Below, piece after piece: positions 10,429 to 37,088 of a stretch of 64,000 bases of DNA. The position numbers were made by a program, and so were the translations under genes. Source of the stretch: Amphiscolops sp. MND2022 (lineage: Eukaryota); the NCBI GenBank assembly GCA_964187785.1, contig OZ076412.1, forward strand, positions 74,338,001 to 74,402,000. The letters are read 5' to 3'. A model generated the notes under the pieces. That model was not told the origin of the DNA and did no database searches. It was given only the letters and a program-made list of their open reading frames with translations. The first letter of the stretch is position 1; every line of letters begins with the position of its first letter.

Positions 10429-10446
10429 TCTCTTTGATATCTCCTA

Positions 10447-10980: not shown

Positions 10981-11056
10981 AAGAGTGCCGTCGGGGTTAT
11001 TGCACCTGTCCGCGCTAGGTCACGTTAGCTGTCTTCAGGTAAGCTACTTCACTTAT

Positions 11057-11182: not shown

Positions 11183-11218
11183 AATTACCTATGCGCTGTA
11201 TTCCTTCTTCTGTCTCTC

Positions 11219-11758
11219 ATGAAGTTCAAACCACCCACCTTGCCATCAAATCCTTTCCTAGAGAAGTGGAAATGGTGGAAGCAATGTTTGAAGGACGGTT
11301 TACTTATCGACGGCTCATCCGAAGATGCTGACAAGTTAGTTTTCCTTCGTACATTTGTCAGCTGCGACTATTTCATCCGCCTTGTAAGTTCTGCAACGTT
11401 TGGACACGCACTGAGAACGTTGAACAGGCACTTTCTGAAGCCCGCGAGAGTGCCCTTCGCCCGTCATCAAATGCTCAGTGCCAGTCAGATGGACGACGAA
11501 TCCATCGTACAGTTTTCTGGAAGGCTGAAACGACTAGTTGAAGACTGCGAATGCACCAGTCTGAGCATCCAAGCACACAACGACTATCTAGTACGAGACG
11601 CCCTAATATCAGGGTTCAGGTCTGACGATGTTCGGGCAAGACTATTGGAGCTGGAAGACTCTAAGGCCAACATCGATAGTTGCATCTCGCTTGCGTGTGC
11701 AATCGACCTATCCAGTGACTTTCGAAACCTTTTCGAAGCGATGAATTTTCAACTGTAG
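11219..11758 (+). pseudogene. gypsy gag remnant
   Basis: WKWWKQCLKDGL, QMDDESIVQFSGRLKRLVEDC, LVRDALISG; premature end. Confidence 0.8.
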
Positions 11759-11972
11759 CTGCGGCAAAGCCGTTCTCTCAGACAACCCGGCGACAACTTG
11801 ATCGACCTGGCACCCCGCTGCCCAACAGGTTGCGAACAAGCTTCGTCCGCGCTGTCAGGTCTTCGTTCTAAAACAGCACCCATAATCAAAGTGCCCAGAC
11901 AAAAAGGACACTTGTCACAAATGCTCCGAAGCAGGACACTGGGCGTCGGTATGTAGATCGACCGCTGTCGTC

Positions 11973-14253: not shown

Positions 14254-14275
14254 AGACTTTCGAGGCGGGAAGGAG

Positions 14276-14427
14276 TGTTTTGAATGTAATATATATGTAG
14301 TTATCAATACAGGTATATAAATAATGTGGTTGTGTTATTTATGTTGGCCTACTTGTTGTATGTATGCTTCAGATGAATGCCCATCAAATAGAAACTTCCT
14401 ACAAGTAATGTTTTCCCTCACGAAATT
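14276..14427 (+). repeat. 3' LTR
   Basis: Directly follows the PPT and aligns to 10281-10428. Confidence 0.85.
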
Positions 14428-14677
14428 GCGTTTGAAAAAAATTGTTACATGTAGTTTTTGGTTTCTCAAACATGTATGGCATCGCGGTTTTTCAAAAAAA
14501 TGGTTTCTTCCACTCGACTGGGAGGCGACATTCAACCAAATAGAAAATTTTGATCGAAAATATTCATTGCGAATATTGTCGACTAGGAATTAGGTCGAAA
14601 TTGAAGGGGGGTATTTTTTCGGTCGACATGATTACGTCGAATGTTCAGAATTTTGCAAAGATGATCGAAAGTAAAAT

Positions 14678-14824
14678 GGGGGGTCATATACGGTGTATGC
14701 ACGCTCGCCTTCACCGTCGCAAAGACCAGCTCCCACTACGATCGCTTCGCGCTCCCCGTTCCCGCTAGGTCTTTGCTCCTGTTTGACCTCGCTTAGCAAG
14801 ATGGGATCATAAGCGGCCCCAAGG
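14678..14824 (-). repeat. GC-rich repeat of about 145 bp, inverted relative to 17324-17467
   Basis: Near-exact reverse complement of 17324-17467. Confidence 0.9.
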
Positions 14825-17130
14825 AAGAAGAAGAAGAAGAAGAAGAAGAGATCAATTAACTTTCGGGATGTGGCAGTACAAATGACTTTCTATCATTGGA
14901 CATTCCAGGACAAAATAAATCGTATAAATAGAATTGACACAAGGAAGGCAAGTGAGGATTGCAGGGTTATAAGATTTAATCGATGCGTGCAATAAAGCCA
15001 GCCAACGCGTTTATAACATGCTTGTTTTCACAATTTAGCAAAACAACTAGCGTTTCGTCAATGTTGTGATTTTGAAGCTCCTTAATGAAACTCCTTCGGT
15101 GTTCTTGGTATGAGACACAGGAAAATAAGAAATGTGCAGTATCATCGACAACTCTACAATAGGGACAAATATCGGTTTTGCTCTTTTTACATCTGAATAA
15201 TAACTTCGCGTACTTCAAAATCATTCATTAGAACACGTAGCGTTTTAACAGAAACTTTCCTACGGGAATGTTGCACATTTTCAAGATGCTGTTTCTTACT
15301 TCAAGCCCTGAGTTTTTTGAGTACACAAGACCATGCTTTATTTCTCGTTGCCATAAGTGCCTGCAACACTCTACCACCTCCTTCTTAAAAGTACTGACTG
15401 AGAATTGTCTAGCATATTGTATGTATATTGCCTTAATTTCATCGGGATCACGATTTACAAATGAAAGTTTTTGTACCAAAAAAATTCTCACCATATTAAT
15501 ATGTTGGGGTATGATTGCTAAATTACCTGCGTTTAGAATATCTGCACTTCTGGCAGTTGAATGAAGAAACAATAATACTTGATTAGTGTAGAGTAGAGAA
15601 GGAGGCCAAACATTACTTAAAACACTAACTACGTAATTCGATACTTGGTAGTTTCTTATCCCAAAGATAGATTTCTGAACACTCCACCACATCTTGTCCA
15701 GAGATGTCATATTTTGATGAAACCATATAGTCATACAGTACGTTACACCTGGTTTCACATATGAATCAAAAATACGTACAGCGTAAAATGGATTTAATCC
15801 TTGCGTTATGAGTATACTAGTTTCTTTCCAGTAATTAACCACCGAGGCAGAGATAATGGCAGCATGTGTTTTGAAACTCAAATCTCGCAAAAACCATAGG
15901 CCCAGTCTTTTATTTCTCTCAACAAATTTATAGTCGGACTGAAATGCTTCTTTTGAGAAATTTATTTGTTCAGTTTTGTCTTTATTCAGCACCTGCCTCC
16001 ATTTGTATGTTTAGTTTTCCGCCTTTTCTAAATATGTGCTTAAGTTTTCTTTGCTTGAAAGAGAAGTACTGTCAACTGCATACATATATGTTAAGTCCGC
16101 ATCTTGGAGCAAGCCCTTCATATAAAATATAAACAAAAGTGGTGACAGTACAGCTCCCTGAGGTAAACCATAAAGAGGGACAAATGACATGTTGATAAAA
16201 TCATTGACTTGGATACTGACTTTCTGATTCGATAAAAAAGATTTTATAGTAGCTAACATTGGACCATTTAAACCACTGTTTATAAGCTTGCTTATCAATA
16301 AAGTTTGATCTACGGAATCAAAAGCTTTCTCTAGATCATATACTGTTGCGATTGGTAAATTTTTCATTGCTAAGATATCATGATATAATTTGTATAAGTA
16401 GTGCAAAGTTGACTTGCCTGGCTGAAAATCAAATTGTTGCTCATCAATGTCGAGGATATCTGATGATCTTAGTCTTCTATCTATCTCTCGTTCATCTACT
16501 TTTCCTAAATGGGATGTAAGTGAAATAGGTCTATATGAAGATGGATTAGAATAATCAGTTTTGCCAGACTTTTTCAAGAATTTGACAATGGTTTTATCAA
16601 ATGGCCAATTCCCCATGAAGAATGCACTGTTTATCAAGTGCAAACATATCCTAATGGTGTTAAATTTGAATTTCTTTAATAGTTTAGGATGAAGGCCATA
16701 AGGTTCTACGCCCTTGTTGTTTGTCTTGATTTTCGTTATGGCTTGTTTAAGTTCATCCATTGTATTACGCATGTTTAGATCATTCTTGACCTACTCCTTG
16801 TAATAATCTCCAACGGTGTGAGCCAACTTCTCTTTCACTTCTACTTTTACTTGTTCATAAAAAGTGTCGTCAAATAGTTTACCAGTAAGGTGTGCACCAT
16901 CGAAGAAAATACGTTGAAAGAGCGCAGCTTTATGGCAATCCTTTTCTAGTGTCCTACCCTTGTGACAAAGTACTCCTATGTTATTTATGTCCATTGAACC
17001 ATTGAATTTGCGGAGATTATCGAAAAATGTTTAAGCGTTTCCCTTATTCATTTCCATGATGCCATTTTGCGTCCAACGGGTATTGTTCTTTTTCATTTCC
17101 TTTTTGAATTCGATTTTAGCCATTTCAACA
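14822..17130 (-). mobile_element. LINE A: 5'-truncated I/Jockey-group-like non-LTR retrotransposon with (CTT)n tail
   Basis: RT motifs YRPISLTSHLGK, DLEKAFDSV, LPQGAVLSPLLF, decayed YAVD; C-terminal CPYC..HFLFSC knuckle; (AAG)n at about 14821-14849 on the + strand. Confidence 0.88.
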
Positions 17131-17323
17131 ATGTTCTTGTTTTTCGGGGCGGTGGGCGTTTGGATCGAATGAATTTGCGCGAAAATGCAATCTGTCACTG
17201 AGATCGAAGTAAAATGGTCAAAAAAATGAGATCGAATCCATGTTTTCAAATACCTAGCGTTTTCAAATAACAATGTTTTTGGTCGTCGGATATGCCCCCC
17301 ATTTCCTCTAATGCCACGCGGCC

Positions 17324-17467
17324 CCTTGGGGCCGCTTATGTTCCCATCTTGCTAAGCGAGGTCGAACAGGAGCAAAGACCTAGCGGGAACGGAGATCGCG
17401 AAGCGATCGTAGTGGGAGCTGGTCCTTGCGACGGTGAGGGCGAGCGTGCATACACCGGATATGCCCC
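17324..17467 (+). repeat. GC-rich repeat with hairpin GCGGCCCC-TT-GGGGCCGC at its left edge (also at about 23692 and 30086)
   Basis: Reverse complement of 14678-14824; perfect 8-bp stem. Confidence 0.85.
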
Positions 17468-17844
17468 ACATATCATACGAAACGTTTCGTCAAATTATTT
17501 TAGCCTGAGACGTTTCGGCATTTTTTTTGCCGAAACGTCCGACGCCATGTTTTTGCCGAAACGTTCGGAATCCGACTGGGATAGTGGCTGGTATCAGTAG
17601 TTTGTTGGTTGTATTTTCTTGTTGCTACTTGTCTGTTGGGATAGTGGCTTGCACGGGGTTTCTTCTTTCGTTGCAGACCATGGTTGAGTGTCTTTTCCCA
17701 TCATCATGACTTACATGGCAATTAATTGTTGACGATGATTCATGATATCTCGGTGGTTTAATCTGTAGTCATATTCATAAATAACTATTAGTGCGGTTAT
17801 CGTTGATAAAGAAGTTATGGCGTTATTTTTCGTGAATTTTTCCG

Positions 17845-17953
17845 TCTTTTCAATGGCTCTTCAGATCGGCAATGCGGCCTATGTTCTAGGAACTGTGAGC
17901 GACAGAGATGCGTTCGAAGAAATTTTTTACATATAGCTTATATTAAAAAAAAA
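17845..17953 (+). mobile_element. 3' tip of the CRE-type LINE with poly(A) (also about 24213-24321 and 30607-30715)
   Basis: Matches 10222-10280; reads VLGTVSDRDAFEEIFYI-stop followed by an A-run. Confidence 0.75.
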
Positions 17954-19356
17954 CCTTTATATCATTGCAGCTTTAAAAAAAATTTCTACCGGTCGACTGC
18001 GATAGTGGCTGGTATGAGTTGTTTGTTGGTTGTTTCTTTTTGCTACTGGGATAGTCGCTGGTATGGGGTTCCCTACTCTCGTTGCAGACCACGGGTGTGT
18101 GTCTCCCCCCCCCCCCCAACATGGTGATGCACATGGCACTTGATTGATGACGAAGATCCATGATATCTGATAGAGGAAAAAAATTTCCGTCTTCGTAGAA
18201 TGATTCTTACTATATGGTGACTTTCCATAGCTCTGAATATTCATTGCTCCGAAATCAAAATCGAGTGTCATAAATTTTAATTATCTGCTTCGATTCTGAA
18301 TCGCAGTCCAAATGTTCTAATTTAAATAAAGGCGCTCCCGCAAATTCTTAACCTAAAATCACTGCGGCAACTAAAGGCATTGACAGTTCGGGGAATATGC
18401 AAAACAAACAACTTGTCAATATTTCGTCAACTTACGCGAATTTTAGGTGTGAAAATAATGTTGGAAATTCCGGAGCTATGGCAGTAGATTTTAAATTCGG
18501 AGCTAAGAATAGTCACCTTACTATATATCTGAGTACATTCTCAGGCTTATGAAGCGCGAGCTTCGTTCAAGAGGAGAGCAGGAATAACCAAAGCCAAGCC
18601 ATGCGCAGGCTTATTTCCAATCTTAATACGTTGGATTTCTTCAGACGTTATTCCCGAAACACTTTTAGACATTAACTTGAATTTAGTTTCTGTCGAAATG
18701 AAATTTGTTGTTTAACAATTGCAGGATGCTTTTGAGGAGAGCCATATACCCATAAAAAGTTTCAAGATTTTAATATTTAATGGGATAGGTTATCGAAGAA
18801 ATGGTGATGGTTTCTTTCAAAACTTCGCGTTCATACTTCGCGAACATAGTTTCATACCTCTTCGTCTCTTGTCAATCTTTTCGCACCAGTTATCAACGAA
18901 CTGTGAAGATAAATCCTGCACTAAACGGTGTCTACTGTGTTCTCTATCGTCAGGAACATACGCATTTGAAGCAGGTGCTTTTTTCGGCACTCTTCATCTC
19001 GGGTTCCTAAAGAGTTTCCAGTGGTCACTTGTATAGCTACTGCTGATGCGCCTGGAAAACCCGCTCCAGCAGACCTTATTCCCGAACTTTTCGTGACCCA
19101 CATCTTCCAATGGTTTTAATGTCGCTCAAATCAGGAAAAGGATTTATTCTGAATTGAAAAAATACGGCACTCATTTGCTATATACTTGTCTCGAGGCTTC
19201 CGTTAAGCGGGCTCACACCTTGAGAAGTCTTTTCTGAACATAGATATGTTACATGATGAATGAATTTTATTTTCTGTGTTATCGAAGTACGGATGAATTC
19301 AATTATTATATATAAAATCTAACTGTTGACTTACCCACAGTGACTTTGTTTTTCAG

Positions 19357-19776
19357 ATGATGGGTCCCGTTCCCATAGGTGGGTATCTTCCCACCATCAA
19401 CTGAAAGTAAGTTGCTTTGCATGTCTAAAAGTCCTGCTCCCTATTAGCAATGAATGCATAGGATAATTTCGATGGTTTAGATTATGAGCCTTGGATCATC
19501 AAGAAACTTTCCAAATTCAGCCATCAACGGCCCGGCAGCGCATTCTATAAATTCATCACAGTTTGGATCACACACATTCAATACTCAATATACGAACTCG
19601 AACCCGATGTCATTCGTCAATAATAGCGCTCAAGCAAACAATGGACATCTGTTTCCCCCAGGGGTAAGTGGTTCAGATTGTGCACATTAATTTTCATTCT
19701 ACTTCTTCATCTCATCAAAATTTTTCCGTTTCAGAACGCAACCTTCTCCCATATGTATAATCAAGCTCGAGATATG
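19357..19776 (+). other. Three-exon cassette, copy 1 (19357-19406, 19481-19663, 19735-19776); host gene unassigned
   Basis: TTTCAG/TTTAG acceptors, GTAAGT/GTAAGT/GTGAGT donors, introns of 74 and 71 nt. The spliced frame is open: DGSRSHRWVSSHHQLK-IMSLGSSRNF...LFPPG-NATFSHMYNQARDM. Confidence 0.7.
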
Positions 19777-19926
19777 GTGAGTCCATTTGTCTGCATTCAA
19801 TCGATCCATTTTCTTTAACATCTCAACATTGAAAAGTAAACGTCTTTCCATGTAATCAGGTTTCGACATAGCTTGTTTTTCACTTTTTGTAGCTGTTCTG
19901 ATTGGCTGAATTCCCGAAACTATTTA

Positions 19927-20100
19927 CAGTGGAATCCGCCTAATTCGTATCGCCAGGGACCGAATAAAATACTACGAATAACGAGAAATACCAATTAACA
20001 GGATGATTTTACTTTGGTCGTCCTGAAATGGGGGTCTCAAAGACGTACGAATTAAACGAAGATCCGAATTATCCGGATACGAATTAACCGGAGTTGACTG
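19927..20100. mobile_element. Tc1/mariner-type MITE, 174 bp (also 26293-26466 and 32685-32858)
   Basis: TA|CAGT...ACTG|TA ends with imperfect TIRs of about 25 bp (..TAATTCGTATC). Confidence 0.85.
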
Positions 20101-20662
20101 TATAATGTAGCTGTTGTGTCTTGAAAAGGGGCGCAGACGACAAGTTCAAGATTTTTGTGAATTAGCTGTTTACCGAATCAGCTGAGCGGAGAGCTTTTTT
20201 TCAGCGATGTTCAAGAGCTCACCAAACAATAGCTTGTTTCCAGAAAATTGTTTCAGCTAAACTGTGGTGGTGTGTAAGGAGAGACCATGTAAATTATCCC
20301 AAAAGCCATCAGAAATATTCCAAAAATATGTTATAACTCCATCCATAAACGACACACTTTTTGGTGGCCAGTCTTGTACCCTCAATACAAAAAACTATTT
20401 TTGGTTGGAAATCAATTATTGGAACCAACAAACTTACACCTGATTAGCAATTGCGAAATAAGTGGTTGATATCAGCGATGTCACAACTCTGGTATCAAAT
20501 AGTTAATTATTTACGGGCTATCGGTCGATCGTGGTATCGAAATTCAGCATGCACAATTGCGTGAACTCTACGCGAAAAGTCCAGTATTATTTGGATTCAA
20601 AATGATTTTGACCTTTTCATTGGCGCTCTGCTCTGCGTTTATAGAATTTCAAGTTACATATT

Positions 20663-22068
20663 TAGTAGTAGTAGTAGTAGTAGTAGTAGTAGAATAGACT
20701 TCAGGGCGTAGCCCTAGGAGGTTTCCACCTTTGATTGTCCGAGTTCTAATTCACCCGCAGTTTTTCAAAGATGTTGCAGTTTCCACATCTGCATAGGAGT
20801 CTCCATGTACATGTGTTTGTCTCATTGTTTTTCTTTCGAAAGAAGGTGTGGTGGATGTCAGTCAGTGTCGTTTTGTCAGGTTTTTGGTGGAAAGAGGGAC
20901 ATGCGCAGATAAGGTAGCTGTAGTCTTTTTGTGCGGGTGAAGAATTTGTCTTTTGGAGTCGAGCCTGGGCTAATGGTAGCTCTCCTCTTCGAAATTGCCT
21001 GGTTGAATCATATGCATGTGGTAAGGTTTCATTAAGTACTACGTCATACTTGTCATTGAGCATAGCCAGTAACATCAGGATGTCGTGCATTTCCATATAG
21101 AGACTGAGGGGGAGGAGCTTCAGTACTTTCATTCTTTGGTAATAGCTTTTTTCTGGTCCAAGATCCAACGAGTCGCCAAATTTTGAACTTTCTCTAGTGT
21201 TGCAGAGTTTGCTTTGTTTGCTTTGCCATGTCTGGAGGCATAGGTTAGTACGGGTCCTATGTCGCTTATTTGAAAAAAATTGACTTCGCATTGCTTTGGT
21301 TGCATGTCCGTTACTGTTTCCGTTCCAGGGAAAGTTGTTGCTGATCATGACTCCCAGGCCGCGTTGACTTTGAACAGTTGAGAGGGGCTTATTCAACAGG
21401 GTAGCGTTTTGTTCTCGCAGATTGAGAAGTGTCGAGATTTCTTGACTTTGGGCATCATTTTGTTTGCTTCCCACCAATTTTCTATATTTGTTGAATAATC
21501 CAGCTGACTTCGCTCTTTGGTAATGACTTTGAAATCATCTGCATAGCTAAAGCTATCAACTTCATTTAGTGATTCAGGGCGATCGTTTATGAACAGTAGG
21601 ACGAGGAGAGGACCCAATATAGACCCCTGCTGGACCTCCTAACCGCTTTTGGAGTAGTTACGCTCCTGTTGTCCTCGCTACGAACGTAATGTTTTCTATC
21701 AGTCAGGTGCAATTTTATATGGAAAACAGCTTTCCACCAAATCTATTTTTTTGGATCAGGATGTCTTGGGGGAGGGGTTGTATCGAAGGCTTTGGCAAAA
21801 TCGAGATATGAAACATCTAGCTGGTCTGTTTCTACCTTGTCATATAGAGTTCATATAATCGGTGTTTGAAAACTAACAATTGGACAGTCGCCTGTTTGCG
21901 GAAGCCAAATTGACTCGTGTAGTCTATCTCTGACATGCTTGTATATATCGTCGAATTTAACTTCTTCCAGTATTTTACAGCAGCAGGATTGTAAACTGAT
22001 GGATCTGTAGCAACTTACGTCATCCTTGTTGCCTTCTCTGAATATTGGTGTCACTTTACAGATTTTCG
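20663..22068 (-). mobile_element. LINE B (CR1/L2-group-like) 3' part with (CTA)10 tail, cut by the junction
   Basis: KVTPIFREG..YRSISL, GVQQGSILGPLL-like, YADDFK; (TAG)n at 20663-20692. Confidence 0.85.
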
Positions 22069-22081
22069 AAAATTGATCGGA

Positions 22082-23498
22082 TTGATGAAACCATATAGTC
22101 ATACAGTACGTTACACCTGGTTTCACATATGAATCAAAAATACGTACAGCGTAAAATGGATTTAATCCTTGCGTTATGAGTATACTAGTTTCTTTCCAGT
22201 AATTAACCACCGAGGCAGAGATAATGGCAGCATGTGTTTTGAAACTCAAATCTCGCAAAAACCATAGGCCCAGTCTTTTATTTCTCTCAACAAATTTATA
22301 GTCGGACTGAAATGCTTCTTTTGAGAAATTTATTTGTTCAGTTTTGTCTTTATTCAGCACCTGCCTCCATTTGTATGTTTAGTTTTCCGCCTTTTCTAAA
22401 TATGTGCTTAAGTTTTCTTTGCTTGAAAGAGAAGTACTGTCAACTGCATACATATATGTTAAGTCCGCATCTTGGAGCAAGCCCTTCATATAAAATATAA
22501 ACAAAAGTGGTGACAGTACAGCTCCCTGAGGTAAACCATAAAGAGGGACAAATGACATGTTGATAAAATCATTGACTTGGATACTGACTTTCTGATTCGA
22601 TAAAAAAGATTTTATAGTAGCTAACATTGGACCATTTAAACCACTGTTTATAAGCTTGCTTATCAATAAAGTTTGATCTACGGAATCAAAAGCTTTCTCT
22701 AGATCATATACTGTTGCGATTGGTAAATTTTTCATTGCTAAGATATCATGATATAATTTGTATAAGTAGTGCAAAGTTGACTTGCCTGGCTGAAAATCAA
22801 ATTGTTGCTCATCAATGTCGAGGATATCTGATGATCTTAGTCTTCTATCTATCTCTCGTTCATCTACTTTTCCTAAATGGGATGTAAGTGAAATAGGTCT
22901 ATATGAAGATGGATTAGAATAATCAGTTTTGCCAGACTTTTTCAAGAATTTGACAATGGTTTTATCAAATGGCCAATTCCCCATGAAGAATGCACTGTTT
23001 ATCAAGTGCAAACATATCCTAATGGTGTTAAATTTGAATTTCTTTAATAGTTTAGGATGAAGGCCATAAGGTTCTACGCCCTTGTTGTTTGTCTTGATTT
23101 TCGTTATGGCTTGTTTAAGTTCATCCATTGTATTACGCATGTTTAGATCATTCTTGACCTACTCCTTGTAATAATCTCCAACGGTGTGAGCCAACTTCTC
23201 TTTCACTTCTACTTTTACTTGTTCATAAAAAGTGTCGTCAAATAGTTTACCAGTAAGGTGTGCACCATCGAAGAAAATACGTTGAAAGAGCGCAGCTTTA
23301 TGGCAATCCTTTTCTAGTGTCCTACCCTTGTGACAAAGTACTCCTATGTTATTTATGTCCATTGAACCATTGAATTTGCGGAGATTATCGAAAAATGTTT
23401 AAGCGTTTCCCTTATTCATTTCCATGATGCCATTTTGCGTCCAACGGGTATTGTTCTTTTTCATTTCCTTTTTGAATTCGATTTTAGCCATTTCAACA
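22082..23498 (-). mobile_element. LINE A, 3'-truncated copy
   Basis: Same ORFs as 15714-17130. Confidence 0.85.
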
Positions 23499-25722
23499 AT
23501 GTTCTTGTTTTTCGGGGCGGTGGGCGTTTGGATCGAATGAATTTGCGCGAAAATGCAATCTGTCACTGAGATCGAAGTAAAATGGTCAAAAAAATGAGAT
23601 CGAATCCATGTTTTCAAATACCTAGCGTTTTCAAATAACAATGTTTTTGGTCGTCGGATATGCCCCCCATTTCCTCTAATGCCACGCGGCCCCTTGGGGC
23701 CGCTTATGTTCCCATCTTGCTAAGCGAGGTCGAACAGGAGCAAAGACCTAGCGGGAACGGAGATCGCGAAGCGATCGTAGTGGGAGCTGGTCCTTGCGAC
23801 GGTGAGGGCGAGCGTGCATACACCGGATATGCCCCACATATCATACGAAACGTTTCGTCAAATTATTTTAGCCTGAGACGTTTCGGCATTTTTTTTGCCG
23901 AAACGTCCGACGCCATGTTTTTGCCGAAACGTTCGGAATCCGACTGGGATAGTGGCTGGTATCAGTAGTTTGTTGGTTGTATTTTCTTGTTGCTACTTGT
24001 CTGTTGGGATAGTGGCTTGCACGGGGTTTCTTCTTTCGTTGCAGACCATGGTTGAGTGTCTTTTCCCATCATCATGACTTACATGGCAATTAATTGTTGA
24101 CGATGATTCATGATATCTCGGTGGTTTAATCTGTAGTCATATTCATAAATAACTATTAGTGCGGTTATCGTTGATAAAGAAGTTATGGCGTTATTTTTCG
24201 TGAATTTTTCCGTCTTTTCAATGGCTCTTCAGATCGGCAATGCGGCCTATGTTCTAGGAACTGTGAGCGACAGAGATGCGTTCGAAGAAATTTTTTACAT
24301 ATAGCTTATATTAAAAAAAAACCTTTATATCATTGCAGCTTTAAAAAAAATTTCTACCGGTCGACTGCGATAGTGGCTGGTATGAGTTGTTTGTTGGTTG
24401 TTTCTTTTTGCTACTGGGATAGTCGCTGGTATGGGGTTCCCTACTCTCGTTGCAGACCACGGGTGTGTGTCTCCCCCCCCCCCAACATGGTGATGCACAT
24501 GGCACTTGATTGATGACGAAGATCCATGATATCTGATAGAGGAAAAAAATTTCCGTCTTCGTAGAATGATTCTTACTATATGGTGACTTTCCATAGCTCT
24601 GAATATTCATTGCTCCGAAATCAAAATCGAGTGTCATAAATTTTAATTATCTGCTTCGATTCTGAATCGCAGTCCAAATGTTCTAATTTAAATAAAGGCG
24701 CTCCCGCAAATTCTTAACCTAAAATCACTGCGGCAGCTAAAGGCATTGACAGTTCGGGGAATATGCAAAACAAACAACTTGTCAATATTTCGTCAACTTA
24801 CGCGAATTTTAGGTGTGAAAATAATGTTGGAAATTCCGGAGCTATGGCAGTAGATTTTAAATTCGGAGCTAAGAATAGTCACCTTACTATATATCTGAGT
24901 ACATTCTCAGGCTTATGAAGCGCGAGCTTCGTTCAAGAGGAGAGCAGGAATAACCAAAGCCAAGCAATGCGCAGGCTTATTTCCAATCTTAATACGTTGG
25001 ATTTCTTCAGACGTTATTCCCGAAACACTTTTAGACATTAACTTGAATTTAGTTTCTGTCGAAATGAAATTTGTTGTTTAACAATTGCAGGATGCTTTTG
25101 AGGAGAGCCATATACCCATAAAAAGTTTCAAGATTTTAATATTTAATGGGATAGGTTATCGAAGAAATGGTGATGGTTTCTTTCAAAACTTCGCGTTCAT
25201 ACTTCGCGAACATAGTTTCATACCTCTTCGTCTCTTGTCAATCTTTTCGCACCAGTTATCAACGAACTGTGAAGATAAATCCTGCACTAAACGGTGTCTA
25301 CTGTGTTCTCTATCGTCAGGAACATACGCATTTGAAGCAGGTGCTTTTTTCGGCACTCTTCATCTCGGGTTCCTAAAGAGTTTCCAGTGGTCACTTGTAT
25401 AGCTACTGCTGATGCGCCTGGAAAACCCGCTCCAGCAGACCTTATTCCCGAACTTTTCGTGACCCACATCTTCCAATGGTTTTAATGTCGCTCAAATCAG
25501 GAAAAGGATTTATTCTGAATTGAAAAAATACGGCACTCATTTGCTATATACTTGTCTCGAGGCTTCCGTTAAGCGGGCTCACACCTTGAGAAGTCTTTTC
25601 TGAACATAGATATGTTACATGATGAATGAATTTTATTTTCTGTGTTATCGAAGTACGGATGAATTCAATTATTATATATAAAATCTAACTGTTGACTTAC
25701 CCACAGTGACTTTGTTTTTCAG

Positions 25723-26142
25723 ATGATGGGTCCCGTTCCCATAGGTGGGTATCTTCCCACCATCAACTGAAAGTAAGTTGCTTTGCATGTCTAAAAGTCC
25801 TGCTCCCTATTAGCAATGAATGCATAGGATAATTTCGATGGTTTAGATTATGAGCCTTGGATCATCAAGAAACTTTCCAAATTCAGCCATCAACGGCCCG
25901 GCAGCGCATTCTATAAATTCATCACAGTTTGGATCACACACATTCAATACTCAATATACGAACTCGAACCCGATGTCATTCGTCAATAATAGCGCTCAAG
26001 CAAACAATGGACATCTGTTTCCCCCAGGGGTAAGTGGTTCAGATTGTGCACATTAATTTTCATTCTACTTCTTCATCTCATCAAAATTTTTCCGTTTCAG
26101 AACGCAACCTTCTCCCATATGTATAATCAAGCTCGAGATATG
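25723..26142 (+). other. Three-exon cassette, copy 2
   Basis: Same exons and splice sites as copy 1. Confidence 0.7.
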
Positions 26143-27028
26143 GTGAGTCCATTTGTCTGCATTCAATCGATCCATTTTCTTTAACATCTCAACATTGAAA
26201 AGTAAACGTCTTTCCATGTAATCAGGTTTCGACATAGCTTGTTTTTCACTTTTTGTAGCTGTTCTGATTGGCTGAATTCCCGAAACTATTTACAGTGGAA
26301 TCCGCCTAATTCGTATCGCCAGGGACCGAATAAAATACTACGAATAACGAGAAATACCAATTAACAGGATGATTTTACTTTGGTCGTCCTGAAATGGGGG
26401 TCTCAAAGACGTACGAATTAAACGAAGATCCGAATTATCCGGATACGAATTAACCGGAGTTGACTGTATAATGTAGCTGTTGTGTCTTGAAAAGGGGCGC
26501 AGACGACAAGTTCAAGATTTTTGTGAATTAGCTGTTTACCGAATCAGCTGAGCGGAGAGCTTTTTTTCAGCGATGTTCAAGAGCTCACCAAACAATAGCT
26601 TGTTTCCAGAAAATTGTTTCAGCTAAACTGTGGTGGTGTGTAAGGAGAGACCATGTAAATTATCCCAAAAGCCATCAGAAATATTCCAAAAATATGTTAT
26701 AACTCCATCCATAAACGACACACTTTTTGGTGGCCAGTCTTGTACCCTCAATACAAAAAACTATTTTTGGTTGGAAATCAATTATTGGAACCAACAAACT
26801 TACACCTGATTAGCAATTGCGAAATAAGTGGTTGATATCAGCGATGTCACAACTCTGGTATCAAATAGTTAATTATTTACGGGCTATCGGTCGATCGTGG
26901 TATCGAAATTCAGCATGCACAATTGCGTGAACTCTACGCGAAAAGTCCAGTATTATTTGGATTCAAAATGATTTTGACCTTTTCATTGGCGCTCTGCTCT
27001 GCGTTTATAGAATTTCAAGTTACATATT

Positions 27029-27088
<60 letters not shown>

Positions 27089-28463
27089 AATAGACTTCAG
27101 GGCGTAGCCCTAGGAGGTTTCCACCTTTGATTGTCCGAGTTCTAATTCACTCGCAGTTTTTCAAAGATGTTGCAGTTTCCACATCTGCATAGGAGTCTCC
27201 ATGTACATGTGTTTGTCTCATTGTTTTTCTTTCGAAAGAAGGTGTGGTGGATGTCGGTCAGTGTCGTTTTGTCAGGTTTTTGGTGGAAAGAGGGACATGC
27301 GCAGATAAGGTAGCTGTAGTCTTTTTGTGCGGGTGAAGAATTTGTCTTTTGGAGTCGAGCCTGGGCTAATGGTAGCTCTCCTCTTCGAAATTGCCTGGTT
27401 GAATCATATGCATGTGGTAAGGTTTCATTAAGTACTACGTCATACTTGTCATTGAGCATAGCCAGTAACATCAGGATGTCGTGCATTTCCATATAGAGAC
27501 TGAGGGGGAGGAGCTTCAGTACTTTCATTCTTTGGTAATAGCTTTTTTCTGGTCCAAGATCCAACGAGTCGCCAAATTTTGAACTTTCTCTAGTGTTGCA
27601 GAGTTTGCTTTGTTTGCTTTGCCATGTCTGGAGGCATAGGTTAGTACGGGTCCTATGTCGCTTATTTGAAAAAAATTGACTTCGCATTGCTTTGGTTGCA
27701 TGTCCGTTACTGTTTCCGTTCCAGGGAAAGTTGTTGCTGATCATGACTCCCAGGCCGCGTTGACTTTGAACAGTTGAGAGGGGCTTATTCAACAGGGTAG
27801 CGTTTTGTTCTCGCAGATTGAGAAGTGTCGAGATTTCTTGACTTTGGGCATCATTTTGTTTGCTTCCCACCAATTTTCTATATTTGTTGAATAATCCAGC
27901 TGACTTCGCTCTTTGGTAATGACTTTGAAATCATCTGCATAGCTAAAGCTATCAACTTCATTTAGTGATTCAGGGCGATCGTTTATGAACAGTAGGACGA
28001 GGAGAGGACCCAATATAGACCCCTGCTGGACCTCCTAACCGCTTTTGGAGTAGTTACGCTCCTGTTGTCCTCGCTACGAACGTAATGTTTTCTATCAGTC
28101 AGGTGCAATTTTATATGGAAAACAGCTTTCCACCAAATCTATTTTTTGGATCAGGATGTCTTGGGGGAGGGGTTGTATCGAAGGCTTTGGCAAAATCGAG
28201 ATATGAAACATCTAGCTGGTCTGTTTCTACCTTGTCATATAGAGTTCATATAATCGGTGATTGAAAACTAACAATTGGACAGTCGCCTGTTTGCGGAAGC
28301 CAAATTGACTCGTGTAGTCTATCTCTGACATGCTTGTATATATCGTCGAATATAACTTCTTCCAGTATTTTACAGCAGCAGGATTGTAAACTGATGGATC
28401 TGTAGCAACTTACGTCATCCTTGTTGCCTTCTCTGAATATTGGTGTCACTTTACAGATTTTCG
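27029..28463 (-). mobile_element. LINE B, copy 2, (CTA)20 tail
   Basis: As copy 1. Confidence 0.85.
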
Positions 28464-28476
28464 AAAATTGATCGGA

Positions 28477-29893
28477 TTGATGAAACCATATAGTCATACA
28501 GTACGTTACACCTGGTTTCACATATGAATCAAAAATACGTACAGCGTAAAATGGATTTAATCCTTGCGTTATGAGTATACTAGTTTCTTTCCAGTAATTA
28601 ACCACCGAGGCAGAGATAATGGCAGCATGTGTTTTGAAACTCAAATCTCGCAAAAACCATAGGCCCAGTCTTTTATTTCTCTCAACAAATTTATAGTCGG
28701 ACTGAAATGCTTCTTTTGAGAAATTTATTTGTTCAGTTTTGTCTTTATTCAGCACCTGCCTCCATTTGTATGTATAGTTTTCCGCCTTTTCTAAATATGT
28801 GCTTAAGTTTTCTTTGCTTGAAAGAGAAGTACTGTCAACTGCATACATATATGTTAAGTCCGCATCTTGGAGCAAGCCCTTCATATAAAATATAAACAAA
28901 AGTGGTGACAGTACAGCTCCCTGAGGTAAACCATAAAGAGGGACAAATGACATGTTGATAAAATCATTGACTTGGATACTGACTTTCTGATTCGATAAAA
29001 AAGATTTTATAGTAGCTAACATTGGACCATTTAAACCACTGTTTATAAGCTTGCTTATCAATAAAGTTTGATCTACGGAATCAAAAGCTTTCTCTAGATC
29101 ATATACTGTTGCGATTGGTGAATTTTTCATTGCTAAGATATCATGATATAATTTGTATAAGTAGTGCAAAGTTGACTTGCCTGGCTGAAAATCAAATTGT
29201 TGCTCATCAATGTCGAGGATATCTGATGATCTTAGTCTTCTATCTATCTCTCGTTCATCTACTTTTCCTAAATGGGATGTAAGTGAAATAGGTCTATATG
29301 AAGATGGATTAGAATAATCAGTTTTGCCAGACTTTTTCAAGAATTTGACAATGGTTTTATCAAATGGCCAATTCCCCATGAAGAATGCACTGTTTATCAA
29401 GTGCAAACATATCCTAATGGTGTTAAATTTGAATTTCTTTAATAGTTTAGGATGAAGGCCATAAGGTTCTACGCCCTTGTTGTTTGTCTTGATTTTCGTT
29501 ATGGCTTGTTTAAGTTCATCCATTGTATTACGCATGTTTAGATCATTCTTGACCTACTCCTTGTAATAATCTCCAACGGTGTGAGCCAACTTCTCTTTCA
29601 CTTCTACTTTTACTTGTTCATAAAAAGTGTCGTCAAACAGTTTACCAGTAAGGTGTGCACCATCGAAGAAAATACGTTGAAAGAGCGCAGCTTTATGGCA
29701 ATCCTTTTCTAGTGTCCTACCCTTGTGACAAAGTACTCCTATGTTATTTATGTCCATTGAACCATTGAATTTGCGGAGATTATCGAAAAATGTTTAAGCG
29801 TTTCCCTTATTCATTTCCATGATGCCATTTTGCGTCCAACGGGTATTGTTCTTTTTCATTTCCTTTTTGAATTCGATTTTAGCCATTTCAACA
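28477..29893 (-). mobile_element. LINE A, 3'-truncated copy
   Basis: Same sequence; one T/A change removes a stop codon. Confidence 0.85.
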
Positions 29894-32114
29894 ATGTTCT
29901 TGTTTTTCGGGGCGGTGGGCGTTTGGATCGAATGAATTTGCGCGAAAATGCAATCTGTCACTGAGATCGAAGTAAAATGGTCAAAAAATGAGATCGAATC
30001 CATGTTTTCAAATACCTAGCGTTTTCAAATAACAATTTTTTTGGTCGTCGGATATGCCCCCCATTTCCTCTAATGCCACGCGGCCCCTTGGGGCCGCTTA
30101 TGTTCCCATCTTGCTAAGCGAGGTCGAACAGGAGCAAAGACCTAGCGGGAACGGAGATCGCGAAGCGATCGTAGTGGGAGCTGGTCCTTGCGACGGTGAG
30201 GGCGAGCGTGCATACACCGGATATGCCCCACATATCATACGAAACGTTTCGTCAAATTATTTTAGCCTGAGACGTTTCGGCATTTTTTTTGCCGAAACGT
30301 CCGACGCCATGTTTTTGCCGAAACGTTCGGAATCCGACTGGGATAGTGGCTGGTATCAGTAGTTTGTTGGTTGTATTTTCTTGTTGCTACTTGTCTGTTG
30401 GGATAGTGGCTTGCACGGGGTTTCTTCTTTCGTTGCAGACCATGGTTGAGTGTCTTTTCCCATCATCATGACTTACATGGCAATTAATTGTTGACGATGA
30501 TTCATGATATCTCGGTGGTTTAATCTGTAGTCATATTCATAAATAACTATTAGTGCGGTTATCGTTGATAAAGAAGTTATGGCGTTATTTTTCGTGAATT
30601 TTTCCGTCTTTTCAATGGCTCTTCAGATCGGCAATGCGGCCTATGTTCTAGGAACTGTGAGCGACAGAGATGCGTTCGAAGAAATTTTTTACATATAGCT
30701 TATATTAAAAAAAACCTTTATATCATTGCAGCTTTAAAAAAAATTTCTACCGGTCGACTGCGATAGTGGCTGGTATGAGTTGTTTGTTGGTTGTTTCTTT
30801 TTGCTACTGGGATAGTCGCTGGTATGGGGTTCCCTACTCTCGTTGCAGACCACGGGTGTGTCTCCCCCCCCCCCCAACATGGTGATGCACATGGCACTTG
30901 ATTGATGACGAAGATCCATGATATCTGATAGAGGAAAAAAATTTCCGTCTTCGTTGAATGATTCTTACTATATGGTGACTTTCCATAGCTCTGAATATTC
31001 ATTGCTCCGAAATCAAAATCGAGTGTCATAAATTTTAATTATCTGCTTCGATTCTGAATCGCAGTCCAAATGTTCTAATTTAAATAAAGGCGCTCCCGCA
31101 AATTCTTAACCTAAAATCACTGCAGCAACTAAAGGCATTGACAGTTCGGGGAATATGCAAAACAAACAACTTGTCAATATTTCGTCAACTTACGCGAATT
31201 TTAGGTGTGAAAATAATGTTGGAAATTCCGGAGCTATGGCAGTAGATTTTAAATTCGGAGCTAAGAATAGTCACCTTACTATATATCTGAGTACATTCTC
31301 AGGCTTATGAAGCGCGAGCTTCGTTCAAGAGGAGAGCAGGAATAACCAAAGCCAAGCCATGCGCAGGCTTATTTCCAATCTTAATACGTTGGATTTCTTC
31401 AGACGTTATTCCCGAAACACTTTTAGACATTAATTTGAATTTAGTTTCTGTCGAAATGAAATTTGTTGTTTAACAATTGCAGGATGCTTTTGAGGAGAGC
31501 CATATACCCATAAAAAGTTTCAAGATTTTAATATTTAATGGGATAGGTTATCGAAGAAATGGTGATGGTTTCTTTCAAAACTTCGCGTTCATACTTCGCG
31601 AACATAGTTTCATACCTCTTCGTCTCTTGTCAATCTTTTCGCACCAGTTATCAACGAACTGTGAAGATAAATCCTGCACTAAACGGTGTCTACTGTGTTC
31701 TCTATCGTCAGGAACATACGCATTTGAAGCAGGTGCTTTTTTCGGCACTCTTCATCTCGGGTTCCTAAAGAGTTTCCAGTGGTCACTTGTATAGCTACTG
31801 CTGATGCGCCTGGAAAACCCGCTCCAGCAGACCTTATTCCCGAACTTTTCGTGACCCACATCTTCCAATGGTTTTAATGTCGCTCAAATCAGGAAAAGGA
31901 TTTATTCTGAATTGAAAAAATACGGCACTCATTTGCTATATACTTGTCTCGAGGCTTCCGTTAAGCGGGCTCACACCTTGAGAAGTCTTTTCTGAACATA
32001 GATATGTTACATGATGAATGAATTTTATTTTCTGTGTTATCGAAGTACGGATGAATTCAATTATTATATATAAAATCTAACTGTTGACTTACCCACAGTG
32101 ACTTTGTTTTTCAG

Positions 32115-32534
32115 ATGATGGGTCCCGTTCCCATAGGTGGGTATCTTCCCACCATCAACTGAAAGTAAGTTGCTTTGCATGTCTAAAAGTCCTGCTCCCT
32201 ATTAGCAATGAATGCATAGGATAATTTCGATGGTTTAGATTATGAGCCTTGGATCATCAAGAAACTTTCCAAATTCAGCCATCAACGGCCCGGCAGCGCA
32301 TTCTATAAATTCATCACAGTTTGGATCACACACATTCAATACTCAATATACGAACTCGAACCCGATGTCATTCGTCAATAATAGCGCTCAAGCAAACAAT
32401 GGACATCTGTTTCCCCCAGGGGTAAGTGGTTCAGATTGTGCACATTAATTTTCATTCTACTTCTTCATCTCATCAAAATTTTTCCGTTTCAGAACGCAAC
32501 CTTCTCCCATATGTATAATCAAGCTCGAGATATG
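32115..32534 (+). other. Three-exon cassette, copy 3
   Basis: Same exons and splice sites as copy 1. Confidence 0.7.
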
Positions 32535-33420
32535 GTGAGTCCATTTGTCTGCATTCAATCGATCCATTTTCTTTAACATCTCAACATTGAAAAGTAAACG
32601 TCTTTCCATGTAATCAGGTTTCGACATAGCTTGTTTTTCACTTTTTGTAGCTGTTCTGATTGGCTGAATTCCCGAAACTATTTACAGTGGAATCCGCCTA
32701 ATTCGTATCGCCAGGGACCGAATAAAATACTACGAATATCGAGAAATACCAATTAACAGGATGATTTTACTTTGGTCGTCCTGAAATGGGGGTCTCAAAG
32801 ACGTACGAATTAAACGAAGATCCGAATTATCCGGATACGAATTAACCGGAGTTGACTGTATAATGTAGCTGTTGTGTCTTGAAAAGGGGCGCAGACGACA
32901 AGTTCAAGATTTTTGTGAATTAGCTGTTTACCGAATCAGCTGAGCGGAGAGCTTTTTTTCAGCGATGTTCAAGAGCTCACCAAACAATAGCTTGTTTCCA
33001 GAAAATTGTTTCAGCTAAACTGTGGTGGTGTGTAAGGAGAGACCATGTAAATTATCCCAAAAGCCATCAGAAATATTCCAAAAATATGTTATAACTCCAT
33101 CCATAAACGACACACTTTTTGGTGGCCAGTCTTGTACCCTCAATACAAAAAACTATTTTTGGTTGGAAATCAATTATTGGAACCAACAAACTTACACCTG
33201 ATTAGCAATTGCGAAATAAGTGGTTGATATCAGCGATGTCACAACTCTGGTATCAAATAGTTAATTATTTACGGGCTATCGGTCGATCGTGGTATCGAAA
33301 TTCAGCATGCACAATTTCGTGAACTCTACGCGAAAAGTCCAGTATTATTTGGATTCAAAATGATTTTGACCTTTTCATTGGCGCTCTGCTCTGCGTTTAT
33401 AGAATTTCAAGTTACATATT

Positions 33421-33462
<42 letters not shown>

Positions 33463-35590
33463 AATAGACTTCAGGGCGTAGCCCTAGGAGGTTTCCACCT
33501 TTGATTGTCCGAGTTCTAATTCACTCGCAGTTTTTCAAAGATGTTGCAGTTTCCACATCTGCATAGGAGTCTCCATGTACATGTGTTTGTCTCATTGTTT
33601 TTCTTTCGAAAGAAGGTGTGGTGGATGTCGGTCAGTGTCGTTTTGTCAGGTTTTTGGTGGAAAGAGGGACATGCGCAGATAAGGTAGCTGTAGTCTTTTT
33701 GTGCGGGTGAAGAATTTGTCTTTTGGAGTCGAGCCTGGGCTAATGGTAGCTCTCCTCTTCGAAATTGCCTGGTTGAATCATATGCATGTGGTAAGGTTTC
33801 ATTAAGTACTACGTCATACTTGTCATTGAGCATAGCCAGTAACATCAGGATGTCGTGCATTTCCATATAGAGACTGAGGGGGAGGAGCTTCAGTACTTTC
33901 ATTCTTTGGTAATAGCTTTTTTCTGGTCCAAGATCCAACGAGTCGCCAAATTTTGAACTTTCTCTAGTGTTGCAGAGTTTGCTTTGTTTGCTTTGCCATG
34001 TCTGGAGGCATAGGTTAGTACGGGTCCTATGTCGCTTATTTGAAAAAAATTGACTTCGCATTGCTTTGGTTGCATGTCCGTTACTGTTTCCGTTCCAGGG
34101 AAAGTTGTTGCTGATCATGACTCCCAGGCCGCGTTGACTTTGAACAGTTGAGAGGGGCTTATTCAACAGGGTAGCGTTTTGTTCTCGCAGATTGAGAAGT
34201 GTCGAGATTTCTTGACTTTGGGCATCATTTTGTTTGCTTCCCACCAATTTTCTATATTTGTTGAATAATCCAGCTGACTTCGCTCTTTGGTAATGACTTT
34301 GAAATCATCTGCATAGCTAAAGCTATCAACTTCATTTAGTGATTCAGGGCGATCGTTTATGAACAGTAGGACGAGGAGAGGACCCAATATAGACCCCTGC
34401 TGGACCTCCTAACCGCTTTTGGAGTAGTTACGCTCCTGTTGTCCTCGCTACGAACGTAATGTTTTCTATCAGTCAGGTGCAATTTTATATGGAAAACAGC
34501 TTTCCACCAAATCTATTTTTTGGATCAGGATGTCTTGGGGGAGGGGTTGTATCGAAGGCTTTGGCAAAATCGAGATATGAAACATCTAGCTGGTCTGTTT
34601 CTACCTTGTCATATAGAGTTCATATAATCGGTGATTGAAAACTAACAATTGGACAGTCGCCTGTTTGCGGAAGCCAAATTGACTCGTGTAGTCTATCTCT
34701 GACATGCTTGTATATATCGTCGAATATAACTTCTTCCAGTATTTTACAGCAGCAGGATTGTAAACTGATGGATCTGTAGCAACTTGCGTCATCCTTGTTG
34801 CCTTCTCTGAATATTGGTGTCACTTTACAGATTTTCGGTCTTTGGAAAAGAGCCTTTGTTGAAACAGGTTTGGAAGATGAGAGTTAATGATTTCCTGAGA
34901 GTACTATGGCGTTTCTTTAGGACAAGATTTCCGATTTTTTTGTGACCCATGGGTTTGTTCACATGTAGATGCTCCGTGATGTCATTTTATTTTGATTCAC
35001 TTTGAGTTCGTTTAGAGGTCCGGGTTCAGTGGTACTGTCAAGTTTCATTTCATTTTTGCCAAACACTGACAATGTAATCGTTGAAAAGTTCGCTTTTTCC
35101 ATCACTATTGGTTGAGACATTCGAGCCGTTTCTCACAGTAGGCAGGATAATTGGTGCTTTGCGAACACGTTTGAGATACTTTTGAATTCGACTGAAAAGT
35201 CTTGCTTTGAAAACCTTGGTTTCGAATTGGGATAGATCTTCTTCAGACGCTTCCAAGATTTCTTTTTCCATTTTTTTATCTTCAAGACCCGCTTCAAGTT
35301 TTGGTTTGGTTTCTTTTCGATTGATTCCACTTGTTGAGATGGGGCGTGGGGCTTGTAATCCAGTGTGGCAGCTTCTTTCTGTGTTCGGTTACTCTAGGAA
35401 TATATGCTCCTGGTACCAATAAAAATTTTTGAAAGACATACCGGATTCCGTTGTTCGTTGGGTTCGCGTCGCCTTTCAAAATCAGTGGTCAAGATACCAT
35501 GTTAGCAGAGATCTAAGATTCTTGAGTTCTGGTGGAACGCAATAGTGTTGTTTAACCATACCTGGGGCCACATAACTGACCTGCCATTCA
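33421..35590 (-). mobile_element. LINE B, copy 3, (CTA)14 tail, extending to an endonuclease remnant
   Basis: Continues past 34837 into linker ORFs (35050-35479; KSELFNDY, LPHWIT) and an RILDL remnant near 35520. The 5' end is approximate. Confidence 0.82.
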
Positions 35591-36598
35591 ATGTTTAATG
35601 AATTTTTCATTAGTTGGGTGTTTGGCTTTTATTCAGCTATCCTATCGCTAATTATCAGAAGCGACAGCTAGCTGTAGCAGAATTTTAATTTGAACAGTTG
35701 ATATTTTTTTTCAGTTTTTCTAATAGTTTTCCACATGATCTGCATGTAGAAAAGGCGGTCACTTGTCAGAAAATAGCGACACGTTTCGCCTTCAATGTCT
35801 AAAATTCATGAAAAAGTCACGGTATAAGTGTTTTGTTTACATGCTGATTTTGGGAACTCAGCAAAGCTATGTTTCCGAAATTAAAATTAACAGGGCGAAA
35901 TTGAATACGAACTTAAATATCTATCAAACCACTGCCTCCAATTTTTTGTAGTAAAGTAAAAACTACCATTTTTGTAGGCGCTTTCTAGGATCGACTTTTT
36001 TAGTATCTAGTTTTCTCGAGGTCCCAGACGTGCGCTGTATGTTCCATCCAAGAATGTAAATGATTTTTGATCCTCTCATCAGAAGTTGAAGTTTGGGACT
36101 AAGAATCTGGGGGGACAGAAATGTCTGTTTGATATCTGGGACCGAAATGTCCGGACACGGAATGTGATTTGAACTTCGTCAATGAGTTTTTTCATGCTTG
36201 AGTTTTATCACCATTAAAGATGTTTTATCACCATTACGTCAAATAGTCGTTTGTTTTTCATAATATATTTTATAAATTTTTCAACATTCACTTCGGTGAA
36301 CCACTAGGTTTGACTACCACTGATCCATTTTAAAACCGTATAAGGTTATGAAACTTATTATTTGCAAATTAGGTACACTTAATCTCTCATGAATATGATA
36401 TGCCTTTACATTTGCCGTTGATTGGTGACTCCCGGTTTAGTACCAGAATGCACAAATGTTATTACCAATTTACGTGCCCTCAATTAATGCTTATTTCGTC
36501 TTAAATTGCGTTTAGACGTGCACAAGGCTGGCTCGCCTAACTAATTACGTGAGAACTATGATGGTAATGAATGAAGTAAGCAGTGGCTGATAGGTTAA

Positions 36599-36607
36599 AA
36601 GATGGCG
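36599..36607 (+). promoter_or_regulatory. Candidate YY1-like initiator motif (AAGATGGCG) upstream of eIF4G
   Basis: Motif match only, about 270 nt before the ATG, in a locally CpG-containing stretch. Confidence 0.25.
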
Positions 36608-36877
36608 CAAATAGTCGCAGTTTAATGTTTGAGTTGTGGCGCGCTAATTATTGCGTCCGGATTAAGTTGTAACACGTTTCAGTATCATCTAACCAGACAT
36701 TTTTATCTGTTCACATCTTACTCATATTAGCTTCTAATCCAACTTAAGCTTTCTTACCAGCCACCATTTTGTTGGCATACATACAAATTTTACACTTGTT
36801 TCAATTGTGTAACTCGACTGAGAGTCAGTCGACTTAAGATTTATTGGTTAGGACTTGAAGTTGAAAGAAGTTATTTC

Positions 36878-37088
36878 ATGTCGTACAAGCAGAATTTCAT
36901 GGCGGGACAGACACCCCAGTTTACTCCCAACGTCGTGTGTCCCACTGCAGTGCAGCCCAATCTGAATGGATCTTACCCCACGCTCACCCAAGTGCCCCCC
37001 AATATGCAGAACCAAGCCAACATCGCCTACATGCGGACCGCACAGTTTCACCCGCAAGCCCATCATTTTTATGCAGGTCCTCATGCAG
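36878..37088 (+). CDS. EIF4G: eIF4G exon 1 (Q/P/N-rich N-terminus)
   Basis: [10 protein letters not shown]...HHFYAGPHA, ending at donor G|GTGAGA (phase 1), which matches the exon 2 acceptor phase. Confidence 0.75.

Follow-up and report, generated by a model that had tools for sequence, protein, structure and literature searches.

The growth of a tandem duplication into a triplication is exemplified by the passage from Bar to Ultra-Bar in Drosophila, which proceeded by unequal crossing over. Tandem duplications dependent on DNA polymerase theta (Pol theta) have been characterized in Caenorhabditis elegans repair mutants, where they are explained by extension of a break end on the sister followed by end joining (PMC7368036, PMC8654963). 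This polymerase adds letters to the ends in three mixed modes, namely in cis, in trans and untemplated (PMC4912351). Here we describe a stretch of the genome of Amphiscolops sp. MND2022 (assembly GCA_964187785.1, contig OZ076412.1, positions 74,338,001 to 74,402,000 of the forward strand; the window, 64,000 nucleotides (nt) in all), in which a 6.36-kb block is present in three head-to-tail copies with an identical 13-nt filler at both joints. We consider it rather probable that this array is a very young tandem amplification of a mostly transposon-derived segment, in which a single non-homologous joint of the Pol theta type was formed and thereafter propagated in a homology-dependent fashion. 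The array is a real, young duplication of a known kind, while the arrangement of variants among its copies lies outside the simple textbook history.

The boundaries of the block were set by repeat finding, self-BLAST and direct reading. The resulting features, including two long interspersed elements (LINE A and LINE B) and a repeat resembling a short interspersed element (SINE), are as follows:

15714-22068, plus strand: copy 1 (c1) of the 6.36-kb block, 6355 nt, consisting of the 5' part of LINE A, a 325-nt SINE-like repeat, a mostly unique core and the 3' part of LINE B
22069-22081, plus strand: joint 1, the 13-nt filler AAAATTGATCGGA
22082-28463, plus strand: copy 2 (c2), 6382 nt, a mosaic with its left 4.85 kb c1-like and its right 1.4 kb c3-like, and the copy nearest to the ancestral state
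28464-28476, plus strand: joint 2, the same 13-nt filler AAAATTGATCGGA
28477-34837, plus strand: copy 3 (c3), 6361 nt, with 10 private substitutions and 3 indels in its left 4.85 kb, 6 of the 7 polarized differences there being derived
14834-17148, minus strand: LINE A, a LINE fragment bearing a reverse transcriptase (RT) with a match to RVT_1, with a (GAA)n tail at its low end and containing the left breakpoint 15713/15714
33421-35398, minus strand: LINE B as present in c3, with a (CTA)n tail and containing the right breakpoint 34837/34838
22062-22073, and again 28457-28468: the perfect 12-nt palindrome ATTTTCGAAAAT, made up of the block end ATTTTCG and the filler letters AAAAT

The copies c1 to c3 lie head to tail, and the similarity breaks off sharply at 15713/15714 and 34837/34838; the window holds no N letters, so that the array is free of gaps. 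An earlier note on this DNA had claimed a triplication of a block of about 6.4 kb with the same filler at both joints. The triplication proved exact to the base by self-BLAST and direct reading, and the identity of the fillers is borne out both by direct reading and by a 34-mer spanning the joint, which has two exact occurrences in the whole 1.07-Gb assembly, both within the array. A search of the assembly with the unique core of the block yielded no further copy and no alternative haplotig of the region. The assignment of the two ends to LINE A and LINE B likewise stands, given the RVT_1 match in LINE A and the other genomic copies found for both elements.

The left 1435 nt of the block are LINE A sequence, and seven other genomic copies of this element, 92-93% identical, run continuously across 15713/15714. 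The right 1.4 kb are LINE B, with the (TAG)n tract being its 3' tail, and other genomic copies of this element are continuous across 34837/34838, as far as 35398. Because the other copies of both elements continue through the two outer edges, these edges represent ancestral, unbroken sequence, and the 13 nt of the filler are foreign to both LINEs. The interior of the block, between the LINEs, holds about 2.4 kb of unique DNA in addition to the young SINE-like repeat of 325 nt and two more short repeats. At the joint, read along the minus strand, the post-RT region of LINE A abuts the RT start (N-terminal region) of LINE B; the two positions differ in register by about 0.9 kb, and no similarity is shared between the two flanks. 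Since the outer edges lie in unbroken LINE copies that are so far out of register, the evidence supports a first joint that was non-homologous and made once, and the earlier proposal of a single non-homologous event holds for this joint, which unites different LINEs at non-corresponding positions without homology.

Three routes involving the LINEs themselves were considered and rejected. Non-allelic homologous recombination between LINE A and LINE B is ruled out by breakpoints that are out of register and by the presence of the filler. A chimeric LINE generated by template jumping of the reverse transcriptase is ruled out since a middle of about 3.5 kb of non-LINE DNA (partly other repeats) is repeated too, and both LINEs extend into the outer flanks. 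A large LINE-mediated target-site duplication is ruled out as the filler has neither a LINE 3' end nor a (GAA)n/(CTA)n tail; its only match is an 8-mer to the 3' region of LINE A, which is at chance level in 64 kb.

The filler is best parsed as two overlapping copies, AAAAT from the LINE B end in inverted sense and TTGAT from the LINE A end in direct sense, with CGGA after them, for which there is no template. Direct reading confirms two earlier observations, namely that ATTTTCGAAAAT at 22062-22073 is a perfect palindrome and that TTGAT (22073-22077) duplicates the start of the partner end, being the first five letters of the following copy. In simulations with random 13-mers, a palindromic extension of at least 5 nt at either side is seen in 0.4% of cases (P ~0.004), and a copy of the five letters abutting the filler in 3% (P ~0.03). 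By comparison, any 5-mer match within 40 nt is found in 88% of random 13-mers (P 0.88), and hence has no evidential value. Within 150 nt of the filler the palindrome and one chance 6-mer are the only matches, and a remote template was likewise not evident, with no match above 10 nt in the 64-kb window, which is the chance level. The pattern fits a partly templated filler of the kind described for Pol theta-mediated end joining, the enzyme being read from the scar; the earlier interpretation is thus probable for the templated part, with CGGA falling outside it. The genome does encode a Pol theta-type polymerase domain (PF00476, 296 bits, C4:28174305-28175621), whose best solved relatives are DNA polymerase theta (E=3e-90, for the polymerase domain only). 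The earlier note had also attributed the palindrome to snap-back copying of the broken end. While the palindrome is real, strict snap-back in cis with a zero-length loop is sterically doubtful as its source, and the same letters would result if two like ends paired in trans via their terminal CG or if a hairpin were opened off-centre.

A second triplication of the same build was found while gathering copies of LINE B. At C8:42044362-42054524, on another chromosome, a unit of 3.35-3.41 kb is present three times, the copies being 99.4-99.8% identical and both joints bearing the same 22-nt filler. Of the 22 letters, 21 reproduce positions 7-27 of the partner end exactly and in direct sense, which makes this filler, to judge from its letters, a clear case of templated insertion. 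The unit contains a copy of LINE B whose (TAG)n tail has 6, 26 and 5 units in the successive copies, the middle copy being the longest, as in the array at 15714-34837. The copies at C8 are related by the tree (d1,(d2,d3)) with a symmetric polarization of 4:5; this array agrees with the unequal-crossover prediction for a recombinant middle copy and fits a simple two-step history. The common build of the two arrays indicates that the process inferred at 15714-34837 recurs in this genome. Separately, we observed an older tandem array with LINE A-family sequence at C4:20180789-20189816 (about 2.5 units of 3.67 kb, 94-97% identical), as well as near-identical LINE pairs 11-23 kb apart on C6, C1 and C4; the latter suggest many local duplications.

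We then turn to the differences among the three copies, for which a three-way alignment, as had been called for earlier, gave a full list of 17 substitutions plus indels and tract lengths. All three private variants quoted in the earlier note were found, at alignment columns 2653/2657, 2887 and 2484. Private to c3 are 11 substitutions and three one-base indels, to c1 four substitutions, one indel and one change in the length of a C-run, and to c2 two substitutions. In pairwise terms the substitutions number 6 for c1-c2, 13 for c2-c3 and 15 for c1-c3 (0.09-0.24%). Two further sets of features distinguish the copies:

20663-20692 (c1, 10 units), 27029-27088 (c2, 20 units) and 33421-33462 (c3, 14 units): (TAG)n, the 3' tail of LINE B
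20755-21957, plus strand: derived-rich tract in the right part of c1, with 4 private substitutions, all derived, and 1 indel

At columns 2653/2657 three sequence versions are present, and the microsatellite too has three lengths; in a diploid, these require that at least one haplotype carry two copies or more.

The private variants are partitioned between the left and right parts of the block (Fisher P=5e-4). In the left 4.85 kb c1 equals c2, from which c3 stands apart at its 10 substitutions and three indels, and both of the substitutions private to c2 fall there. In the right 1.4 kb c2 equals c3, from which c1 stands apart at four substitutions and one indel, with a single substitution private to c3. 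The switch in this mosaic lies between alignment columns 4846 and 5072, which flank the (TAG)n tract. With further copies of the repeats in the genome taken as outgroups, 10 of the 11 polarized differences are derived on the odd copy (6 of 7 in c3-left and 4 of 4 in c1-right; one-sided binomial P=0.006). The two derived tracts, c1-right and c3-left, are each bounded by the microsatellite and a joint and sum to exactly one period, while c1-left, the whole of c2 and c3-right, together twice the length of the derived tracts, are close to the ancestral sequence. Both the mosaic and the derived excess rest on the 17 substitutions in total.

Taken together with the structure of the joint, these observations suggest a history in two steps. 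In the first, two broken ends, one within LINE B and the other 6.36 kb upstream within LINE A, would have been united a single time and without homology. This joining would have been of the alternative, Pol theta type, as judged from the scar, with the addition of 13 nt, and is the product to be expected if a break end over-extended on the sister or homologue were end-joined instead of annealed. In the second step, the joint would have been propagated by homology-dependent exchange or out-of-register repair synthesis, with a switch point at the (TAG)n tail of LINE B or at most about 100 nt from it. That the second joint was copied from the first in a homology-driven step is indicated by the identical fillers and the mosaic nature of c2. 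The earlier note had proposed that unequal crossover or rolling-circle copying spread the same joint; of this, homology-driven copying survives, whereas neither simple route fits the variants. A plain duplication followed by drift and sister unequal crossover fails because c2 matches c1 on the left and c3 on the right, the opposite of the prediction. One-shot rolling-circle copying fails since even private changes are expected in place of the strong clustering seen (Fisher P=5e-4), and a star-like one-shot origin with even drift is ruled out by the counts and clustering alike. No single exchange acting on a precursor with two copies would give the arrangement of variants seen in the assembled order. 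This arrangement could have been reached by an exchange between two-copy alleles that differ, by a contraction from four copies to three, by a small ordering error in the assembly, or by tracts of error-prone repair synthesis.

Several points weigh against this two-step history. Firstly, the polarity of the mosaic is reversed with respect to sister unequal crossover, which predicts a c2 that is c3-like on the left and c1-like on the right. Secondly, the 10:1 excess of derived changes in c1-right and c3-left (P=0.006) fits no clock-like history, as histories of this kind, be they of paralogues, of alleles or of conversion between neighboring copies, predict a polarization of about 1:1. Gene conversion between neighboring copies and the capture of a divergent allele are both ruled out on this ground, the symmetric polarization which they predict being seen in the C8 control array (4:5) and not here. 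Thirdly, the templated pieces of the filler are short, with 5 nt each, and the dependence on Pol theta is putative. Finally, the depth of the block in read-derived data, which consist of Logan contigs from four runs of one sample, is 1.4-2.0 times that of the flank and thus short of 3x. In this comparison the contig k-mer depth of non-repetitive parts of the block was set against that of the single-copy contig 35236-36999, such depths not being copy numbers:

run X1: block about 130, flank 67, ratio 1.93
run X2: block 50, flank 25, ratio 1.98
run X3: block 50, flank 32, ratio 1.56
run X4: block 64, flank 45, ratio 1.43

The support from reads is moreover confined to contigs of this one sample, which is probably the assembled one, and the c3-private alleles are absent from the contigs over the covered stretch, an absence which is uninformative as contigs drop minority variants.

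Depth above the single-copy level is thus obtained as the triplication would have it, and the threefold level is not. At face value, the depth amounts to about 3-4 copies in a diploid genome, more than for a single-copy locus and fewer than for a homozygous triplication. The array is therefore probably heterozygous in the sample, for instance with 3+1 copies, the alternative being an overcount by the assembly. A haplotype-duplication artefact would leave single-copy depth and at most two versions of the sequence, whereas the depth is 1.4-2.0 times that of the flank and three versions are present. In all four runs, the contigs carry the 2-of-3 majority allele at every informative site, by which a 1:1 mixture is excluded. 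One contig passes 34837/34838 into the flank, and none among the matches listed crosses the filler. We also observed that at 34976-35157 the contig over the right edge departs from the assembly at about 20 positions in 180 nt of LINE B; this contig represents either a second, divergent haplotype or a chimera formed in the graph with a different copy of LINE B.

An overcount or misordering by the assembly is an explanation that we regard as unlikely. It holds that the joint and the duplication are real, that the true haplotype has two copies (in the order A-X-filler-B-Y) or the right parts of c1 and c2 swapped, and that the third copy or its placement arose from threading near-identical reads of two haplotypes. 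In keeping with it are the k-mer depth, which points to about 3-4 copies in the diploid genome and not 6, the lack of an alternative haplotig of the region in the assembly, and the near-ancestral c2, which equals the sequence expected for a single-copy allele. Furthermore, dropping c2, or swapping its right part with that of c1, turns the derived-rich DNA into one contiguous period over a joint. However, c2 has private changes and a microsatellite length (20 units) of its own, the window has no gaps (N), and the same three-copy build is seen at the second locus on C8. The majority alleles in the contigs match ratios of 2:1 or 3:1, and not 1:1. Also, the assembled adjacencies X-filler-A and Y-filler-B differ from the two-copy model at sites 81 nt and 298 nt from the joint, which any long read would phase.

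A further possibility bears on the cause of the derived excess. The derived changes could be the footprint of error-prone repair synthesis at the formation of the array and not of drift, which we hold to be of low probability. In this version, a break would have occurred at the LINE-tail microsatellite, and a polymerase of low fidelity, leaving about 2.5 changes per kb, would have extended both ends before they were joined. Microsatellite-induced breaks in human cells are reported to lead to kilobase-scale mutagenesis, at rates far below the 0.25% seen here, and also to extrachromosomal circular DNA (eccDNA) (PMC11161834).

The latter outcome is pertinent to another explanation that is, in our assessment, decidedly doubtful, namely a single event in which the 6.36-kb fragment was circularized by end joining, copied as a rolling circle and taken up by homologous repair of a break at (TAG)n. 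It would account for the identical fillers, for the count of exactly three copies both here and at C8, and for a switch point at the microsatellite, given that breaks in microsatellites are reported to yield eccDNA in human cells (PMC11161834). Against this, it predicts copies that are identical at birth and change evenly later, whereas the private substitutions number 4, 2 and 11 (c1, c2 and c3) and are clustered. The tree (d1,(d2,d3)) with 4:5 polarization at C8 fits two steps separated in time, and no permuted copy of the circle type is present elsewhere in the assembly. Although a given pair of ends can repeatedly yield the same templated end-joining outcome, the independent formation of the two joints by the same deterministic end joining on the same ends deserves next to no credence, as 4 of the 13 filler letters have no template, making an identical repeat unlikely, the same two breakpoints would be needed twice, to the base, and the same coincidence would be needed again at C8. 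Propagation, by homology, of a joint that was made once, as set out above, remains the history that we prefer.

The array has further coding features within it and a gene downstream:

28246-29535, minus strand: chimeric open frame of 429 aa across joint 2, comprising LINE A RT, filler and LINE B RT start
36878-37089, plus strand: first coding exon (with an ATG start) of a gene of the eIF4G type, located 2 kb downstream of the array
45429-45896 and 52375-52860, plus strand: the MIF4G and MA3 domains, respectively, of the eIF4G-type gene

The 429-aa frame is open in c3 only, where position 28774 has kept the A found in the majority of the family; in c1 and c2 a stop closes it at this site. Look-ups of the two joint-spanning open reading frames (ORFs) returned no record in public assemblies. 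At 19357-19777, and repeated in c2 and c3, there are three short exon-like pieces with AG/GT borders and good splice signals that are identical in all copies, and the middle piece encodes a Q/N/S/P-rich stretch beginning with ATG. These pieces may serve as alternative 5' exons for the eIF4G-type gene that follows the array. Two very young repeats were also observed: the 325-nt SINE-like element (17149-17475), with copies 97-99% identical and a part inverted at 14676-14824, and a 180-nt element (19924-20103 and 56144-56323), with genomic copies 97-100% identical and a contig k-mer depth of up to about 1e5. The region at about 6000-14300 is GC-richer (0.45-0.49) and has retroelement-type ORFs.

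The array offers a clean natural example of the birth of a tandem array, in which one non-homologous joint with a Pol theta-type scar was made and the joint was then copied by homology. If the block indeed carries the predicted 5' exons, its copy number could affect a central translation factor. Should the reversed mosaic and the one-sided derived excess hold up, they would link a microsatellite break, end joining and local hypermutation in a germline event; and if the error-prone reading were true, the locus would record, in a natural germline, hypermutation on the kilobase scale that was coupled to a tandem duplication.

When set against known systems, what appears to be new here is the reversed mosaic of c2 and the one-sided excess of derived changes. 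As in LINE-linked large target-site duplications, two copies of host DNA surround a short insert, but the insert of the array has neither a LINE 3' end nor a microsatellite tail. The duplications and triplications of human PLP1/MECP2 attributed to FoSTeS/MMBIR (fork stalling and template switching/microhomology-mediated break-induced replication; cited in PMC4352052) resemble the array in combining a gain of copies with extra base changes near the joints; the human triplications are usually inverted or complex, with different joints each, and the density of changes in the array, about 0.25% over 6.2 kb, would far exceed reported values. Bar and Ultra-Bar share with the array a homology-driven expansion in which each added unit inherits the novel joint, the difference being the polarity of the middle copy, which here is reversed relative to sister or homologous exchange between diverged copies. 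In the Pol theta footprints of natural C. elegans isolates and of in vitro reactions (PMC4490562, PMC4912351), as in the filler of the array when parsed as above, a few untemplated letters accompany an inverted copy of one end and a direct copy of the other; the pieces in the array are only 5 nt each, and the C8 locus has a piece of 21 nt. The C. elegans brc-1/brd-1, helq-1 and tnsl-1 mutants and BRCA1-type tumours (PMC7368036, PMC8654963, PMC13031629) likewise show head-to-tail duplications of a kilobase to tens of kilobases, whose junctions have no long homology and sometimes bear a templated insertion. These published Pol theta duplications are mostly of 10-20 kb and are single events, whereas the array described here is a natural germline allele, fixed or segregating, with three copies in a wild-type genome.

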